Assembly (NCBI GenBank): GCA_039096225.1
Contig: JBBPEB010000032.1
Span: 806,001 to 870,000, forward strand
Reading direction: 5' to 3'
From: Blastocystis sp. Blastoise
Taxonomy: Eukaryota > Protista > Bigyra: Opalinata
DNA length: 64,000 nt
The position numbers were made by a program, and so were the translations under genes. Shown here one piece after another: positions 7,159-23,660 of this stretch; position 1 is the stretch's first letter, and every line of letters starts with the position of its first letter. The notes beneath the pieces were generated by a model. It had not been told where the DNA came from. It did no database searches and saw only the letters and a program-made list of their open reading frames with translations.

Positions 7159-8884
7159 ATTGGTAAAAAAAAAAATGTAGTAATTGACTATAGTTTATAT
7201 TAATAAAATCTCTTAAGGCATTCAACACTGATTTATGACTTTTATCCAATATATAAATATTGTAGATAATACTTGAAAATAAACAAAATATATAAGGTCT
7301 ATTCACCAATTCCACTTTAATGAAGGGAATGTGAGAAATTGTTTGTGTCTTAACGATTTTGTGTGGATCTCGATTTCAGATGGCGAATCCTGCGTCATTA
7401 TTGTTTTTATTAACTATTTCTCGAGTTCATTCTTATTGGACATTTAAAAATCAATCCATAACATTATCTTGTTATTCTATTGTGTCGATCCTCGACCAAT
7501 CAAATAGGAGATTTTTTGAGATGTTCCATTGCTTGATCTCCACGAAACAAATGGGCACCAGATACCGAAAAAAAAGCCAGATTGAGTTTCCTCTTTTAAC
7601 ACATAATATTCCCTTGATTATTTTCGACTTTTTTAAAAAGAGGAAAATTCTCTACTTATCTCCTGAGGAATCCAACATTGATTTCCACAAACATAAAAAT
7701 TCTCGGTTTCTCATTCATTTCCAACTTTGTTTCCCTATTCAGTTGATTTATTTAACGGCTTCTACGATAATCAATGGATAAATAATTTTTTAGAGAAACT
7801 GAATGGACATTTATTTAATTGGATACAGGGTTCGCCACGAAGACTCTCTTGGAGTACTAATTTCCTAAAAGAGCCAGTTTCATGGGTACTTTTAGGCGCA
7901 TAAGGCGTAGATAAAAACTCTCTTGGAGTACAGACCGTACTCAAAGTACAGTTTGGCGAACCCTGATTGGATATAAGTTGTGTTTTTTTTAAACAAATTC
8001 CACTCAAACGCAGAGTTCTTTAGAGATCTTTATCATTTACTTTGATTTTCTTCTCGATTATTCTTCTTGTTGATGTTTGTCATCGATCTTCTCTTCTCCA
8101 TATCAGAAATCACAACATATATACTATATTTACTCTCTTCCTCATAGATTGACTCGTCATAGGCTTTCCCGTATCTATTCAATCTATTGGATGCAGCGCA
8201 ATCACTCTAGATCTCTAATGTTTCTATTGCTATCACCATTAGAGCAGGAAAACATATTGATTATTCTATGAAATATACATGTTCTTTCCGTATTTTCTTA
8301 TAAACTATATGCAACGAAGCTCAGTCTTATTAAGTAATATTATTAGAGTAACCAGTGGATTTCGTTTATGGATTGATCATGATTTATAAAGTCATTTTTT
8401 TCGTAAAGTCACTTTTAAACTATTTGATACTTTGTATATTGATGGACTATTGATTTTCATGATCCATAGTATTAAATGAATGATGAGAAATGAATATTGA
8501 TAGTGAATCAATTGGAATGTTGTTGTTTTTAGAATAATTTATGTAGTTGAATCTCTTTATCATAATGTGTATTTTTATTGAGTAATAAATACATTGGATG
8601 TTTTTTATTATATATTTTTTTGAAAGAGTGAACATGATTTCTTATAAATTTTTATTTTCATGTAATTCTATATTTATATTTATTCTTTATAGATATACCG
8701 TGTTTTTTGATTTATTTAAATACATGTATTGATAGATTATTGAGAATATTAGGATACACATAATAAAAACTTGTTTTTATATTTTTAATCAACAATAACG
8801 TCTTTGAATCATTTATTAACTTGTTTATATATAAGTTTATAAACAAAACAAAATGTTAAATATACATATATATATATACATATA

Positions 8885-11800
8885 TTATAAAGGAGGTAAA
8901 CCGAAAAGAGTCGGATCAAATTCATTCAATGAAGAAATAACCTATAGAATCATATATATATATATATTATTTATGTTATTCTTATTGAATAAAAAAAAAT
9001 ATAAATATAATAATGTCTAAAGAAAGATTTTATTACAATCGAAAATAATAGACACTATGGACATTTTTTCAGGTTTCTGTCAAAAGGTCCAACGACTTTT
9101 TTGTTTTGGTTTCCCCAGTGGTGAGCAGTGAAAATTTTTAAATATGTAGCTGACAAAAGGTTATTTGATTTTTCTGTTTGGTTTCCCCAGTGGTGGAGCA
9201 GTGAAAAAATTTTAAAGGGTAGCTGACAAAAGGTCCAACGACTTTTTTGCTTTGGTTTCCCCAGTGGTGAGCAGTGAAATTTTTTGTCAGAGTTTCAGTG
9301 ATTTTATAAAATCGAAAAGCAGTGCAAAAGTATGACGCACCTTAAAACAATAATTGGCGAATAAAAATGGTTTTAAATATTCTCTATTTTTTCATTTATT
9401 GGTTTTTTTATTCTTTTTGTGGTGTAATAATAAACGATATAACAAAACAAACAAATTAAATATTATCAAATAATCATAAAAACAAATAATAGAAAACAAT
9501 AATAATAAATATATAAAAAAAAGATAATAAAACATATAATAAATAATATAATAAAATATATATAATATTTAATTTATAATATTTCAACCAGGACAGTTTC
9601 AGTCTTTAATTTGCATTTAAGCCTAAGCAACCTATATAAAGAGATGATATTAGTTAAGTATTACTAATAATAATATATATATAACATTTTAAAATAATAA
9701 TAAAATAAAAAATATATACCTTTTCTAATCATTACAAGACAGGCAAGGAATCAAAGACAAAGAACCATCCTATAAAAGATATATGATAAATAGTATAATG
9801 AATAAAACAATATAATTAAATATATATATATACTTTTTATAAACCATTCTCTCCAATTAACAACAACGACAGCAACGGAACCCCTGGAAACCTATATAAA
9901 GATAGAGTAAGTTATATAATATAATAATATATAATAAAGTAAATTAATATAGAATAATAAAATATAAATATATACATTAATGCTATATAAATATAAAGTG
10001 GGGTTAGTTATATAATATGTAATAGATAATATAGATGATATATACCTTCTTTTAACATTGATTCCTTCCATTCTAGACCTAAAGAACCCATCTATAAGAG
10101 AGCCACGACCACACACAAGAAGGACCAGAACGTTTAAGGAGACCAGCAAGTGTCAAAACACCAAGCAGAGACAGCTACAATAGAAAAATGAATGAATAGA
10201 GTAGAAAAAATAAAATATAAAGAAACAGCAAACACCTACCATCATAATAGTATCATATATAATAAAATAAAAATAAAATTTAATAATATATCATATTAAT
10301 CATATAAGATATAATAAAATAAATATGTGATAAGTCATGTAGCATTTTGTTTTGTTATAAAAGGGTGTAATAGGAATTTAGAAGATATAGCTGAAATAAT
10401 GAAAATAAACATGAATAATCTCATATCTACTAAATATAGAGAATCTTCATCATAAGAAAAATGAATGGTTAAGAATAAAAGAGAAAGAAAAATTTTATTT
10501 CTATGAGGAAAATGGATATTGTTATTGTTATTTTCAATTTATCATAATTATCATAAGTAATACAAAAATTGTTTTATTTTAAAGAATTATATAGTTATTT
10601 ATCATTATATCATTTTATAATCAGTTTTGACTATGGAAGAGTGATTTTTATCCTTAATTGTCAAAATTATTTTTAGTATCACTCAGTAAGTATAAGTCTT
10701 TTAAAAAATAAATATAGGTTACAATACAGACTTATAGAGAAGACTCTGAAACTTCTATTTCCAGAATAAAAGTCATTTATATAATCCAGAATGATTGCCT
10801 GAATCATTATTTAAAGAATCAGTTTTATCACATATCTTCAATAAAATTATAAAATAAAGAAAATGAAGATAAAAAGGTCTAGAGTCGAAAATGTTATGAA
10901 ATATTATCTTTTTAATGTATTTGTCCCGATTTTTTATTAATCTGTTATCATAATATGACAAAGAGAGTGGTAAAAACATTTTAAAAGTGAATTAAAGCAA
11001 TAATTGGAATCAAGTTAAAGTCTTCTAATACCTTTAAATAGACTTGAAATACATAGAGTAAGCATTTTTTCATGCAAATAGTGTTTTTCATTTAAATAAT
11101 ATCAAAAACAAATCAAAATAGTATTTTATAATTACTCAGCAAGAACTTTTTCTAGTATTCAAGGACTTACTATTATCAAATATACGTATAAACAAACAAA
11201 AATCATATTTTATATATTTTTAGTTGAATAGTCGGAGTCGTGTTGATAGTTTATTATAAAACAAATGCAAAAATCACTTTTTTGTCAAAAAAAGTCTTAT
11301 ATCGATATATAGTTTTATTCATAATTTATTTATTGTCTACAAACTCTGTGTATTCATTTTAAGTGATTTTTAGTAAAACTAAAATTATTTGAAATACATA
11401 TTCTAATTTCGAAAATGACAAAAACATATTATATTACATATTTAGTGTTTAAATGAAGTTTAAAAGTTATTAAAATATCAATTAGTTAAAAAATATAAAA
11501 TATTGAGAATCTCCATTTTTATGACTTGTCTTAAATCACGTTAAAGGTGTATAATTGAATAGTTGCATTGATTATTTGTATGATTCTAGTAATATTTTCT
11601 AAGAATTTTGTTTTTTAACAAGAATAAATTCTTAATTTATTGTTTATCAACTTAAAAATGTATTTAAATGATTATTTTCTTGTGTAAAAGGGTATAGTGG
11701 TTATATGAAAAAAAAATTACGCAGAATCATTTGATAATATAATTTTGAAAAATAGAATTATTATTTTGAACTAAACTAATTTTTCACATATACTCATTAT

Positions 11801-13895
11801 AAAACGACTTGAATAATCTTTTGAGAAGATTATTTTGTTTTATAATACACTTAAGAAGTAATTGAATGTTATTGTGTCTCTTTTTGTTAAAAAGATTATT
11901 TTGAATGCTATTTTTGATTGATCTATATATTATCAATGCATTCAATGATGAAATAAATACATATGTAAAGAAAAAATAGTAATTGATCTAATTTATCTTC
12001 ATCTATTTGAATAGATAATTTTTGAAAAAATTAATATAATATAATTATTGATACCTATATATAAAGAATTAGTTATGTAATTGACCTTAAGACAGGAATT
12101 GAACCTGTTTTCTATCATAAACTGATAGATACTTACCAATATAAGCTTAAGGATAATATAGAATAAAAATACATAAATGAAAGTAAAATAGTAGGAATAA
12201 TGAGTCAGTATGATGTGTAAGGATATATTTATATATGTATAAGTGAAAAAGGATGCTAGAAGAAGGGAAAAGAAGTAAAAAAGAATAAAAGAGAAAGAAA
12301 TATAAAGTAAATGAGATAGGGTCTTTAATTATTGAGATTAATAAAAAAAATGAAAAATAATTTATAATAAATGACAAAGATAGATATATAGAGATCTATA
12401 ATAATAAGGAATGCAGAAGAGAAGAGGATTAGAGGATAAAGAATAAGAAGAAGATAAGGAAGATAAGGAAGAAGATAAGGAAGATAAGGAAGAATAAGAA
12501 GAAGATAAGGAAGAAGATAAGGAAGATAAGGAAGAATAAGAAGAAGATAAGGAAGAATAAGAAGAAGAAAAGAAGAATAGGAAGAAGATAAGGAAGATAA
12601 GGAAGAAGAAGAAAAGAAGAATAGGAAGAAGATAAGGAAGAAGAAGAAGAATAGGAAGAAGAATAAGAAGATAAGGAAGAATAAGAAGAATAAGAAGATA
12701 AGGAAGATAAGGAAGAAGAAGAAGAAGATAAGGAAGAAGAAGAAAAGAAGAATAGGAAGAAGAAAAAGAAAAGAAGAATAGGAAGAAGATAAGGAAGAAG
12801 AAGAAGAATAGGAAGAAGAATAAGAAGATAAGGAAGATAAGGAAGAATAAGAAGAAGATAAGGAAGAAGAAGAAAAGAAGAATAGGAAGAAGATAAGGAA
12901 GAAGAAGAAGAATAGGAAGAAGAATAAGAAGATAAGGAAGATAAGGAAGAATAAGAAGAAGGAAATGAATAATGACAACAAGAAGATGAAGAATAAATAG
13001 AATAATGATAAGAAAGAATAAATAGATTAATAAGAGAACAAGAGGATGAATGTGAAGAAGAGACAAGGAAGGAGGTGAAAAAAAGAAAGAAAAGTAAGAT
13101 AAAGAATAGGAAGAAGATATACAAGAAAATGAAGAAGAAGAGAAAGAAAAGAAAAGAAGAATAAACAAGAAACATATATAGAGAAACAGAAAGATATAAA
13201 GAAATAAAAGAGATAGATAGATAGATAGATAGATAGAGAGAAAAAAAAATACAAAGATATAAATAGATAGATACACTAATAGATGAATAGAAAGAAAGAA
13301 GAAAAGAGAGACATAAAGAAGAAATTAGATAGAAAGAGATAGAATTCTATATAGAATGAGAGATATACAAAAGAAATCAAATGAAATAGAGAATAAGATA
13401 AAAATAGATACAAGAATAAAGATAAAAAGAGAAATAGAGGAGTAGGGAAGGTGTATAAAAAAGAAAGAATATAAAGATAGGTAGAGAGGAATTGAGAAGG
13501 ATAGAGAAGGAGGAGGAAAACAGATAGAATTGGAAGACGAAGAAAAGAAGATGAGACGAAGAAGGGAGAAAAAAGGAGCAGGAAGTGAATATCAAGAAAG
13601 ATAAATTTATATAGAAAAAAATTAGAAAGAAAAATACATACAAAGAAAACGATAGGGAATGATAGAGAGAATTATAATTTGAATGACATAGAGAGAAGGA
13701 GAGACAAAGCAAGATAAAGAAGTATAATAGAAAAAACAAAGAAGAAAAAAAGAAGAATAAAAAAAGAAAAGATAGAACAATAGTATATGAGAGAAGAAAG
13801 AGACAGAAAGAAAACGGGAAATAGGGTAGAGACATAGAAGGTAATAAAATATATAGAAGGGGAGAGGGGATTGAGATAAATAAATAGATAGATAT

Positions 13896-13968
<73 letters not shown>

Positions 13969-16900
13969 GATAGAAGAATACCGAAAGATATAGAGAAGGA
14001 GATAAATATTAATAAAAAGGAAAATATGGATAGAGAGGAGATAGAATCAAACAGAGAAGGAGAAGTAGATAAAAGTCGATTGAGGGAAGAGAGAAGTAGA
14101 TTAAAATAAAAACAAATAGCAAGAGTTAAAAGGAAGAAGGGAAGAATATAGAATGATTTGAAGAATGAGATGTATATAGAAGTGAATAGAAGGAAATAGA
14201 GAAGGAGAAGTAGATAGAAAAGATTAAAAATAGAAGGAGATAGAAAGATAAGAGAATGATATAGATACAATAGAATGAGATAGAGAAGATAAAGTAGATA
14301 GAAATGGATAGAAATAAGAAAAATAAATAGGATAAGAGAGAAAGAGAGATAAAAGGATATAAAAGGATATAGAAGGAGAGAAAACGGATTGAGATGTAGT
14401 AAGATGGAAGGATGTAGATGGAAATAGAGAAGTAGATAGAAGATGATGGAGAATAAAGAGGAGATAGAAGAGGAGATAGAAGGAGAAAAAGAAGAAGAGG
14501 AAGTAAATTAAGTTAGAAGGAGATATAATAAGATAGAGAAGTAGATATACGTAGATATAAGGAAATATACGAAGATATAAGTAGATAAGAGAAAATAGAA
14601 GGAAATAGAGAATGAGATTGAGACACATAAATGAGGTAGAATGAGATAGATAAGGATAGAGAAATATGAAGAGAAATATAGGAATACAGAGAGATAGAAT
14701 GATGTTGAAAGAGAAAGAAAAGGAAAGACTGAAGATTGAGACAGAAGGAGTAGCTGAGATAAAAGGAAGATAGAGAAGGAAATTGAAAGATGAAGGAAGA
14801 AGGAGAGAAGATGAAAGAAGAAGAATATAGAAGAAGATAGAGAATGAGATAATAGGGATAGAAAGAGAAAAATAGGAAAAAAGATGGTTAGAAGAAAATA
14901 GAAAAGGAGAAAGAAGGAGAGATAGAAGGAGAAATAGAAGGATATAAAAGAGATTAAGAAAGAAGTTAGAGACAAGAAGATATAGATATATAGAAAGAAA
15001 TAAAAGGATTAAATAGAAGATTAAGATAGAAGAAAAGAGACAAAATAGAAGTAGATATAACAATATAGAGAATGAAAGGATAGAAATAAAAATAGAAAAT
15101 AGATAACTAGAACATAAGAATATATAATAATAGAGAGAAGGAGAGAGAGAAAAAAAAGTAGATATAAAGTGGAAAAGGAGACATAGAAGGAAATATAAAA
15201 GGAAACAAGAAGGTAGAAAGAGACATATAAGATAAAATAGACAGGGACAGAGAGAAATAAATGGAAAAAGAATAAGGATAAAGATGGATACGAGAATAGA
15301 GAGGGAGAGAAGGAAGATTGAGATAGAATTATACAGAAAGAGGAGAGAAGGAAGATAAAGAAGGAAAATAGGGCAGTAAAAAAAAGGGAATCAGAAGGAG
15401 GAGAGAAGAAGTATGAGAAGAATAGAAAGAAGGAAGAGGAGGAAGGCAAATAATAGAAGAGAACTATATATATAATAAATAGTGATATAAATATAAATAA
15501 GAAGATGAAGATCTGAAAAAAGCAAAGAATTATATGGAGAAGAAGAAGAAGAAGAGGAAGAGGAAGAAAAGGAGGGTATACACTAATACATGTCGAGGAA
15601 AAAGAAGTATAGAATAAGGAGAAGAGGATAACAGGATAAAAGAAAAAGACATAACGAAATACAATGTAAATAGAATAGTGATTAAGAAAGAGTAATGAAA
15701 GAGTGATATAAAAGGGAAGCGAAGATAAGAGAGAGGTATAATTAAAAAAAAGAAAAATAAAGGAATTTAGATAGAAGAAAAAATAAAAGAAAAATGAAGA
15801 TCTGAGGAAGATAATGAATCAAAGGGAGAGACAAGGATATAGGCTGGAGACAAGGCATAGGAAGAAGTAATAAAGAAAGAAGATGAAGAAATAAGGAGAT
15901 AAAAGTGTAGAAGGAAGAAAATGAAGAAGAGAGAAGAAGGAATCATTTTGTGTAAGAAGAAGAAATAAAGAAGAACTAGATAATAAATAAATAAATAAAT
16001 AAATAAATAAACATACCTAATAGAAAAAAATGAATTTGGTGATGTTGAGTCATAGGGAAAGATAACCAACAGAAACAGTAGAAAACAACCTAAATAAATA
16101 AATAATAATAAATAAAAATATAAAAATAATGAAAATAAATAATAAAATGAATTAGATTCTAATTTAAGAAAAAACAAAAAGAAAGCTAATAATAGATAGA
16201 ATGAATATACGATAAGTACTCTATTATATAATACTTAAAAATATAACAAAGAAAAAAATTAGAGATAATTATAAAAATAAATAAATACATATATACTTTG
16301 AAAGTAGTTTGACATCATAGACGTTGTTGACATGGACTGAAGAGGACTCTTATAACCATGGACGAGCAGGAACCTATACATGCTAGAGAATGGGAGAATG
16401 TTAATATTGATAAAGAATAAAAAATAGTAATATACATACAAGAGAATAATCTGAAGTTAAAATCAACTTCTATTTTTTAAAATAACAGCTAATAAAAATA
16501 AAATAAAAATAAAGAAAATAAGTAACAAATGAAAATATTTTCTAAGTTAATAGGCTCAATAGCGTATGGGTGTATTCAGGTCTTAAAAGAAAAATCATTT
16601 TTGCGGGAATATCAAGAAACTCAAAAAAAGTATTTTTTCCCTCCTTTTTTCACTGTCACTTTTCTTTAATATTTTTGACTTTTTAGTATTAAAAACGATT
16701 CTTACAGGCATGTATAGAGACTCTATACCACTTTTGAGACTAAAAATCAAATATTTAAAAATGAGTGAAAAATCTTGACTAGCAAGAAAAACAATTATGT
16801 GAAGCTGAGTATGTTGTGTATACACATATCTAACAACAGAGATGATAAAAACACACAACTCCTCTTGGTTTAGGACATAATTATGAATTCTCTCAAAAAA

Positions 16901-17959
16901 GCTATTTTAAACCTTAAAACGATACCCTGAACTATAAATCAAGTCCTGAATGATATTCTAAAGTCATATTTTTAAAAACAGGTTTAATGACGATAATCAA
17001 TAAACAAAAACAAGAGCTTCCGTTTTACTTTTCTTTTTTGAATTTTTAATTGTTTTGACTTTCTAGGGTAGTTGGCTGAAAGAAATGTTGTCGTCTTTAG
17101 GCTAAAAAATGATGAATAAAAAAGTCAAGTCATTTTATTGTTTTTTCCTTGGGAAATAAAAAAGAAGAAATTTTTAGGTGTGTTTTGGTTTAGGCTGTAT
17201 AATGGTTTTTATTGTAAAAGGACTTGACGAGAATGATTGAAATGATAATACATCACTCAGAGAACACACAACTTTAAAAAATTTGTCACTCATGTAATCC
17301 ATTCCTGAATTATAGACTTCAGAGAAAAAATTAAAGTCTTTTTGGTTTTAAACAGTCATTTTAAATCATAAAACACTGTAAAATAGTCAATATTTAGAAT
17401 GTCTATGATTATATAAATAAACAATATATTTTGTAGAGTTATTTTTAAGTTTTTCTCGTCAAAAAGAGAGAAACTTGACAAGTTGGCGGACACTCTTTTC
17501 TCGAGTTTAGGCCAACGTATTTTTGATTAAAAAATCCCAGTCATTTTGTTGTTTCTCTTACGGGAAATAGGGTCAAAAAAACACAAAATGTCCATAGTGA
17601 GATATATGCATATATACACATGTGATTCCTTGGAATTGATTCATATCAAAAGACTGAGAAGGAACAGCAACAACTTTCATATCTATATAAAGTATAATAA
17701 ACAAATAGTATAATATAGTATATATAACATAAAAATAGAATACTATTATAACTAATTATATATATATATACTAGCAGCTAGTGCGGCTTTGATTCCATTT
17801 ATTGAGTCCTCAAAAACAATACATTCCTGCGGGGATTTATTCAGCTTTTTGGCTGCTACTAAAAATATATCTGGAAACGGTTTACCTATTTATATATATA
17901 TATAATAAATATATATATTTATTTAATAAAAGAATATATAAAACAATGATTCATTAAAA

Positions 17960-17995
<36 letters not shown>

Positions 17996-18820
17996 AAAGA
18001 ATATATAAAATAATGATTCATTAAAACTATATATATAATTAATATATATATTTATATAATAAAATAATAAATAAAATAATGATTCATTAAAACTATATAT
18101 ATAATTAATATATATATTTATATAATAAAATAATAAATAAAATGATGATTCATTAAATATATATATATAAACATATATATAATAAAATAATATATAAAAT
18201 AATGATTCATTAAATATATATATATATATATATACAATGAACAACTCCTGGTTCTGAAGATGAAACTAAATAAGACATTTTACTGAAAACTTCCTATATA
18301 TATATATATATTATATTATATATAAATTATATCTATTTAAAGAATTCTAAAGAATATACAGGATGTGTTTTTGCTTTCCCTTCTAAAATAATTTTAGAAG
18401 ACGATGTTGCAATAGCTTGTTTTATATTATTATTATAAAAATATTCAGTTATTCTTTCTGCACCTGGCATATATGGAGATTCATAATTAGTTTCATTCAT
18501 ATATTGACGATAAAGTTTCATCTATAGAAAATGAAATTTATGATTATCATTCCAATTCAAATCAGTTTTAATAATAGACATAAACTTACGTATTCTATAT
18601 CAGTTATTACTTCTTCTAAATGAAACTCTCTAATAATCATTTGTATAGCAGCCATAGCTGTTTGACCTGAAAACCTCCGTTTTATATCAGGACTTAATTT
18701 CCAATTATTTGGAGATACGATTTTCAAAACTTTCTCTTTACATATATTAGAGATTGATTCTGAATCAGTAAGTGTTCCATCCAAGTCCCATATAACTACC
18801 CATTCATTTGTAGATGTCAT
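8885..18820 (-). CDS. HAD-superfamily hydrolase, pseudouridine-5'-phosphatase (HDHD1/PUDP/GS1)-like; 6 exons, last exon 8885-8941 behind an 8.7-kb intron
   Basis: Motif I WDLDGTLTDSE, AIATSS, KPFPDIFLVAA, VFEDSINGIKAALAA. Exon 17682-17618 (MKVVAVPSQSFDMNQFQGITC) splices in phase 0 to exon 8941-8885 (VISSLNEFDPTLFGLPPL*), matching the family C-terminal SLxDFxPxLFGLP motif. Confidence 0.9.
9081..9285. repeat. left subterminal tandem repeat, 3 x 73 bp
   Basis: Unit CAAAAGGTCCAACGACTTTTTTGTTTTGGTTTCCCCAGTGGTGAGCAGTGAAA (copy 2 diverged) starts at 9081, 9154 and 9227. Confidence 0.9.
12084..12152 (-). ncRNA. tRNA-like cloverleaf (non-canonical; probably not a decoding tRNA)
   Basis: Minus strand reads CCTTAAG CTTA-TATTGG-TAAG TA TCTATCA-GTTTA-TGATAGA AA ACAGG-TTCAATT-CCTGT CTTAAGG T: four fully paired stems (7/4/7/5 bp) and a perfect B box GGTTCAATTCC, but no 8-9 linker and no U33 anticodon loop. 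Confidence 0.7.
12153..16010. repeat. ~3.9-kb purine-rich (A/G on +, C-depleted) low-complexity tract with GAA/GAT/AAG/TAA core (about 12440-12960) and (GATA)n runs (about 13210-13240, 13885-13970)
   Basis: Direct inspection: extreme strand asymmetry; the triplet phase of the core is broken by 2-nt slips, e.g. near 12570. Confidence 0.9.
17071..17570. repeat. right subterminal degenerate direct repeat (~90 bp x 2, at 17071-17158 and 17482-17569)
   Basis: GTTGGC...TCG..TTTAGGC...AAAAAA..C.AGTCATTTT.TTGTTT......GGGAAATA is shared by both copies. Confidence 0.6.
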
Positions 18821-19187
18821 TGAAAAAGTTGCAGAAAATTTTAATTAAAATTATTTTTTTTCTAATAAATTATAGTTGTTGGTAATAAACTCGTTTATTT
18901 ATAATTCTTAAAAAAATGTCGATTAGAATCTAGACCCTTATAGATCTTTGTTTTATATATTAACATAACTATATTTATTAGAATATAAGGAATAGAATAC
19001 AAAGACAATAAAAAATGTAGAATAAAATACAATTATTTAAAAAATCACTATACGTAGAATAAAAAGACTAGTAGCATATATAAACATATATAAATAAATA
19101 AGCCAAAATAAATATTAAAAATAAATGATTATAATGAATCTATTGATTGTTATATTGTATAAAAAGCTTTTATATTATATATATCAC

Positions 19188-23660
<4,473 letters not shown>

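Follow-up and report, generated by a model that had tools for sequence, protein, structure and literature searches.

Introduction

How long an intron can the spliceosome of a short-intron lineage tolerate? This question is raised by a 64,000-nt stretch of DNA (the window) from Blastocystis sp. Blastoise, a stramenopile protist of the tortoise gut (assembly GCA_039096225.1, contig JBBPEB010000032.1, positions 806,001 to 870,000; positions below are counted from the first nucleotide of the window). On the minus strand of the window lies a gene for a HAD-type phosphatase, the last two exons of which are 8676 nt apart, and most of this distance is occupied by a DNA transposon of the CACTA type. 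An earlier note, made from the sequence alone, had regarded this apparent gene desert as one 8.7-kb intron. In the explanation that we consider very likely, the last intron of this single-locus HAD-IA phosphatase gene had 126 nt until, very recently, an 8547-bp CACTA element without transposase entered it, and most transcripts of the gene would now probably be mis-processed.

The Distant Last Exon

The HAD-IA gene, on the minus strand, extends from 18820 to 8885, and its six exons with 684 coding nt specify 228 amino acids (aa). Its exon borders were read as GT-AG on the window DNA. The six-exon protein is a prediction read from separate exon pieces, and all protein comparisons were run exon by exon. 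Introns 1 to 4 measure 68, 66, 350, and 89 nt, which agrees with the view of the earlier note that the other introns here are short. Intron 5 (8942-17617, minus strand) has 8676 nt. It starts with GT at 17617-17616 and ends with AG at 8943-8942; as had been noticed before, exon 5 finishes with ...GITC at 17618 and is directly followed by the donor GTATAT, and the acceptor TATAG ends at 8942. Both sides are in phase 0, and joining them restores the frame. Behind this acceptor lies exon 6 (8885-8941, minus strand), which has 57 nt including the TAA stop codon and is translated into VISSLNEFDPTLFGLPPL*, the C-terminus of the pseudouridine-5'-phosphatase family.

The assignment of exon 6 was examined with homologues collected through exon 1, which led to a 214-aa protein, WA158_006029, and from there by a word search to about 120 full-length relatives. 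Many of them carry the name pseudouridine-5'-phosphatase. Window positions 8001-20000 were then searched by tblastn with 121 homologues. For 71 of the 121, a minus-strand high-scoring segment pair (HSP) has its exact start at 8941 and is aligned with the last 18 or so residues of the homologue itself; for example, the tail VLNRLTEFDPSALGLPPL is paired with VISSLNEFDPTLFGLPPL of exon 6. No competing C-terminal match was found elsewhere in 8001-20000 with any of these homologues. The tail shared by the relatives of WA158_006029 can be written as (V/I)(L/I)xSLxxFDPxxWGLPP, and a looser form, (V/I)(L/I)xSLxxFxPxx(W/F)GLP, describes the family. The solved human pseudouridine-5'-phosphatase (9m7l, 3l5k) ends with LNSLQDFQPELFGLPS, and exon 6 aligns to these last residues. 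In addition, the six exon pieces follow one another in the family alignment with neither gaps nor overlaps. Because of the exact start at AG, the phase, the 71 homologue tails, the human tail, and the gap-free tiling, the exon at 8941-8885 is part of the HAD gene. Thus, the proposal that the missing family C-terminus lies in phase 8676 nt away has more than a chance match behind it. An origin of this exon from another transcript, which the earlier note had named as a refutation, was considered and rejected, as the exon is the family's own tail and starts in phase exactly at AG.

The other five exons, all on the minus strand, are recognizable as parts of the same enzyme. Exon 1 (18590-18820), with 77 codons and its ATG at 18820, opens with MTSTNEWVVIWDLDGTLTDS..., bears the DxDGT motif of HAD phosphatases within motif I (IWDLDGTLTDS), matches Pfam HAD_2 at 1-63, and occupies the family N-terminus in the alignment. 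When exon 1 was used alone, a search of PDB gave zero matches, and phmmer against 1.84 billion representatives gave six weak matches only, WA158_006029 being among them. Exon 2 (18360-18521; 54 codons, ...SPYMPGAERITE...AIATSS...) matches HAD_2 positions 65-110, produces tblastn HSPs with 106 homologues, and is 50% identical to WA158_006029 in the family alignment. Exon 3 (18236-18293; 58 nt, EVFSKMSYLVSSSEPGVVH) has GT-AG borders, ends in phase 1, and falls at the expected columns of this alignment with 58% identity to the same protein. Exon 4 (17772-17885; 114 nt, KPFPDIFL...CIVFEDSINGIKAALAA) contains motifs III and IV and is matched by Pfam Hydrolase (1.5e-9) and by HAD_2 at 135-171. By itself it reaches 45.2 bits with TIGR01509 (NCBIfam, HAD-IA variant 3), for which the cut-off is 29.4, and its best matches in PDB include pseudouridine-5'-phosphatase and HDHD1A. 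Exon 5 (17618-17682; 65 nt, (N)MKVVAVPSQSFDMNQFQGITC, ending with ...QGITC) is placed in the family alignment. Exons 1, 2, and 4 have collinear Pfam matches on the HAD_2 profile, and the catalytic motifs DxDGT (DLDGT), ATSS, K (KP), and FEDS are visible in the family alignment. Judged by these motifs, the gene is of the HAD-IA variant 3, pseudouridine-5'-phosphatase type, with a predicted substrate. It shares the variant 3 motifs with human PUDP/HDHD1A (3l5k, 9m7l), and its tail VISSLNEFDPTLFGLPPL parallels the human LNSLQDFQPELFGLPS. A difference from most homologues is seen just before the motif III lysine. The codon T|GT split between exons 3 and 4 (18236 / 17885) encodes Cys at this place, where most homologues have Gly (VVHCKP vs VVHGKP).

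Intron 3 (17886-18235, 350 nt) is almost wholly made of a 66-nt AT-rich tandem repeat with 5.3 copies (17894-18234). Sequence resembling this repeat gives more than 100 matches (149 listed) in the genome, for which, here and below, the 33.3 Mb in 34 contigs of the Blastocystis sp. Blastoise assembly were searched.

Paralogues and Public Gene Models

Two loci, on contigs 24 and 4, are paralogous to the HAD gene. The protein WA158_006029, deposited as a hypothetical protein of Blastocystis sp. Blastoise, is encoded on contig 24 of the same genome (99% identity). Its model ends with GLTQIHI* at the alignment column where exon 5 of the window gene ends. When the pattern F-D-x-x-x-(W/F)-G-L-P was back-translated, it gave four matches in the genome and zero with a reversed control. 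One of the four is exon 6. Another lies at C24:161580-161605 (C24, contig 24; likewise below), codes for FDATMFGLP, and is found on the same strand as WA158_006029, 335 nt past its last codon. It is therefore probable that the contig-24 paralogue (C24:160177-161605) shares the last intron, with a length of about 325 nt, and that a last exon of about 57 nt is lacking in its public model. The annotation of WA158_006029 probably reads into this last intron.

The Inserted Element

The element occupies 9053-17599 on the minus strand. It is 8547 bp long and is a non-autonomous En/Spm element of the CMC type. Its ends are perfect 15-nt terminal inverted repeats (TIRs), CACTATGGACATTTT, starting with CACTA, at 9053-9067 on the plus strand and at 17585-17599 on the minus strand. 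This 15-nt sequence has just two matches in the window, and 0.01 is expected by chance. The element is flanked by a 3-bp target site duplication (TSD), AGA at 9050-9052 and at 17600-17602 on the plus strand (TCT in the sense of the gene). As the earlier note had stated, the TSD is 15 nt from the donor: the donor G is separated from the TSD by 15 nt of the intron, and on the other side the insertion has left all 111 nt upstream of the acceptor as they were. Removal of the element together with one copy of AGA leaves 8676 - 8547 - 3 = 126 nt, and the same coordinate arithmetic thus bears out the earlier figure for intron 5 before the insertion.

The interior of the element is poor in coding capacity. 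Close to the left end, Tandem Repeats Finder detected a subterminal repeat with a 73-nt unit in 2.8 copies (9077-9279, plus strand), and at the right end the same program detected no comparable array. The region 12000-16000 is a low-complexity core with tandem arrays, which is purine-rich on the plus strand with a GC skew of 0.77-0.89. Read in the sense of the HAD transcript, this 4-kb core is about 82% pyrimidine and contains 2.6% G. The plus strand of the element has no open reading frame (ORF) of 70 aa or longer, and the minus strand has low-complexity ORFs only; none in the core is credible. In a genome scan with PF02992 (Transposase_21), zero matches were found inside 9053-17599, and scans of the same interval for tRNAs by ARAGORN and for Rfam families gave nothing. 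The element is a non-autonomous, transposase-less DNA transposon of the CACTA/En-Spm type. The statement that the HAD gene is split by a CACTA-type element is thus supported by the TIRs, the 3-bp TSD, and the subterminal repeats.

A Young Family of Copies

The element belongs to a family with about 29 full-length copies in the genome. They are 8.4-8.9 kb long and 98-100% identical at their ends, and a few diverged or longer relatives exist in addition. The copies fall into two length classes, one near 8.55 kb (17 or so) and the other near 8.83 kb (11 or so), and three copies that were compared differ mainly in the low-complexity core. Right flanks were taken from 17 copies, and the TSDs were compared in the 16 usable copy pairs with both flanks. 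In 13 of the 16, the 3-bp TSD is perfect, with a sequence that varies from copy to copy; two further pairs mismatch at one base.

Such a large number of near-identical 8.5-kb copies can cause mis-joins in nanopore assemblies. A copy could thus have been misplaced between unrelated flanks; alternatively, the 57-nt exon could come from another transcript. We regard it as very unlikely that the arrangement at the HAD gene is an artefact of this kind. Joined, the two flanks give one complete gene in phase, the exon has its exact start at AG, and a 3-bp TSD matches on both sides, whereas a mis-join would yield neither a completed gene nor a matching TSD. There is also no alternative candidate for the C-terminus in 8001-20000.

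PF02992 has four matches in the genome, all just over the cut-off. One of them, a weak match of 30.8 bits (C23:375036-375410, minus strand), is situated inside a 15.5-kb relative (C23:362896-378401), the ends of which are 92-95% identical to those of the window element. The strand of this match corresponds to that of the HAD gene, and judged by it the element and the gene have the same orientation. The transposase for the window element would be supplied in trans, probably by this 15.5-kb relative. CACTA elements are not mentioned in the genome paper (PMC12129017), which describes nanopore reads and RNA-seq of the isolate.

Some copies lie next to each other. At C13:909068-926219, two copies abut, the first being nested in the left TIR of the second right after CACTAT, with duplication of TAT. 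At C23:362833-362896, just 62 bp separate an 8.8-kb copy, at its right end, from the left end of the 15.5-kb relative, so that the two stand head to tail.

The age of the insertion can be estimated from its sister copies. Over 7.0 kb, the window copy shows 0 and 1 substitutions relative to two copies on other contigs, along with a few indels in repeat length, and it differs from two slightly longer copies by about 0.4%. Another sister copy (C25:60392-68940, TSD TCC) lies within an open frame, which it interrupts; the frame has at least 569 codons, 70 of them upstream and at least 499 downstream. A Pfam search of this interrupted frame found no family. The insertion on contig 25 is likely a knock-out of a serine/threonine-rich coding exon. 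Since copies are 0-1 substitutions per 7 kb apart and this frame is interrupted, the family is entering coding DNA at a rate that neither selection nor decay can match. By the same comparison, the insertion in the HAD intron is very young, probably too young for decay. The intact exons therefore carry zero information on the splicing of the stretched intron. The earlier note had argued from the intact exons that either a giant intron is removed or the insertion is recent. Its second branch is favoured by the near-absence of substitutions and by the broken frame on contig 25; the exons themselves do not serve as evidence on splicing.

In a family so young, many insertions should be unfixed, and the HAD insertion itself may be heterozygous or confined to a part of the culture. 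The normal protein would then come from an empty allele, in which the intron has 126 nt, and the assembler would have kept the filled allele. A strong diploid k-mer signal has been reported for all isolates (PMC12129017), and either flank is present as a single copy in the assembly, as in a collapsed diploid. Against this, the empty site is found nowhere in the assembly, nor is a second copy of the locus; the other matches to the flanks are to the AT-rich 66-nt repeat of intron 3. In a collapsed diploid assembly, a lone copy of the flanks is expected with or without heterozygosity. Heterozygosity at this locus is, on balance, somewhat doubtful, and it is compatible with the recent insertion and the mis-processing of transcripts from the filled allele rather than opposed to them. 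Heterozygosity is also one way in which the cell may tolerate the insertion. The two paralogues, or some correct splicing that is left, would be others. The description of the desert as an 8.7-kb intron is sound with respect to the genomic geometry only. That the gene is intact would be accounted for just as well by a heterozygous insertion or a dispensable paralogue.

Fate of the Transcript

What happens to a transcript that starts from the HAD promoter and enters the element? Read-through of the exon-5 donor gives VYMHISHYGHFVFF*, so that the ORF ends just inside the element, as the earlier note had described for a retained intron. Splice-site-like hexamers in the element were counted as plain consensus strings. 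In the sense of the gene, 18 hexamers resemble donors and about 45 resemble acceptors. The first of the acceptor-like sites are 242 and 313 nt away from the HAD donor, and these distances are inside the normal intron range of the gene. The eight nearest acceptor-like sites were translated, and a stop codon is met within 4-16 codons in all of them. Exons 5 and 6, now 8.7 kb apart, are probably not joined in most transcripts of the HAD promoter. Instead, these may use acceptor-like sites inside the element, terminate there, or retain the intron, and each of these outcomes would exchange the conserved 18-residue tail for a few unrelated residues. On the evidence of these sites, most transcripts probably lose the conserved tail.

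Two points weigh against such loss. First, the authentic donor and acceptor, as well as the 111 nt upstream of the acceptor, which should include the branch site, are intact, so that correct splicing is physically possible. Second, introns show greater length and variability in tortoise isolates than in human isolates (PMC12129017). It may be that the intron is a true giant intron, in which 17618 and 8941 are joined efficiently and the normal 228-aa protein is made. Both splice sites and the entire 3' part of the old intron are in place, and pairing of the TIRs might loop the element out: the distance of the perfect 15-nt repeats is 18 nt to the donor and 111 nt to the acceptor, and the duplex between the intron ends has a computed energy of about -30 kcal/mol. 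The pairing does not extend beyond this, as the two element ends are not complementary past 15 nt. The intron would be 25 times as long as the longest other intron of the HAD gene, many acceptor-like sites in the same orientation are nearer than the authentic one, and the integrity of the exons gives no support when copies are 0-1 substitutions per 7 kb apart. We therefore regard efficient joining over the full length as unlikely, and less likely than mis-processing. The stronger proposition, namely that the Blastocystis spliceosome removes an 8.7-kb intron accurately even though the introns of human-associated relatives are fixed at 30 nt, with TIR looping that might restore the 126-nt geometry, appears more improbable still.

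Public gene models bear weakly on this point. A full-length model of the window HAD gene is absent among the 120 best matches to WA158_006029, where its identity of about 43% should rank it near the top. Introns supported by RNA-seq were required for gene models (PMC12129017), and this absence, which depends on the ranking, weakly indicates that a complete model of the gene is lacking in the RNA-guided public annotation and, with the same reservation, tells weakly against efficient splicing. A profile search with the family alignment was uninformative, as the 120 proteins listed were generic family members and included neither the window protein nor WA158_006029.

Known Systems and Significance

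The event in the HAD gene is an ordinary insertion of a non-autonomous CACTA element into a gene, of a kind well known from plants. In maize, dSpm elements inserted into genes in the sense orientation are known, and the phenotype depends on how the host transcript is processed. The placement is the same here. The window element and dSpm insertion alleles are also alike in the CACTA ends, the 3-bp TSD, the subterminal repeats, and the lack of transposase in the inserted copy. A longer related element has a weak match to PF02992. The window element and dSpm differ in three respects. One is the host, here a stramenopile gut protist. The interior, instead of being a deleted transposase gene, is a 4-kb strand-asymmetric low-complexity core, and the element landed in an intron that already existed, not in an exon.

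Another comparison is with introner elements, which are DNA transposons giving rise to introns in protists such as Micromonas and Aureococcus. Introners are about 0.1-0.3 kb long, bring or co-opt splice sites, and make a new intron in an exon. The element in the window resembles them in that it is of the cut-and-paste kind, has TIRs and a TSD, and has become intronic in a protist gene. In contrast, it is 8.5 kb long, enlarges an existing intron at 15 nt from the donor, and supplies neither splice site.

For the HAD gene, the analysis corrects the gene model, and automatic annotation likely stops at exon 5. The locus offers a clean, datable case in which a transposon has stretched an intron about 70-fold in a short-intron lineage, with both splice sites intact, and it is a natural test of the intron length that the Blastocystis spliceosome tolerates. 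If it is true that the 8.7-kb intron is spliced, young CACTA insertions would form a natural series for the limits of intron-definition splicing.

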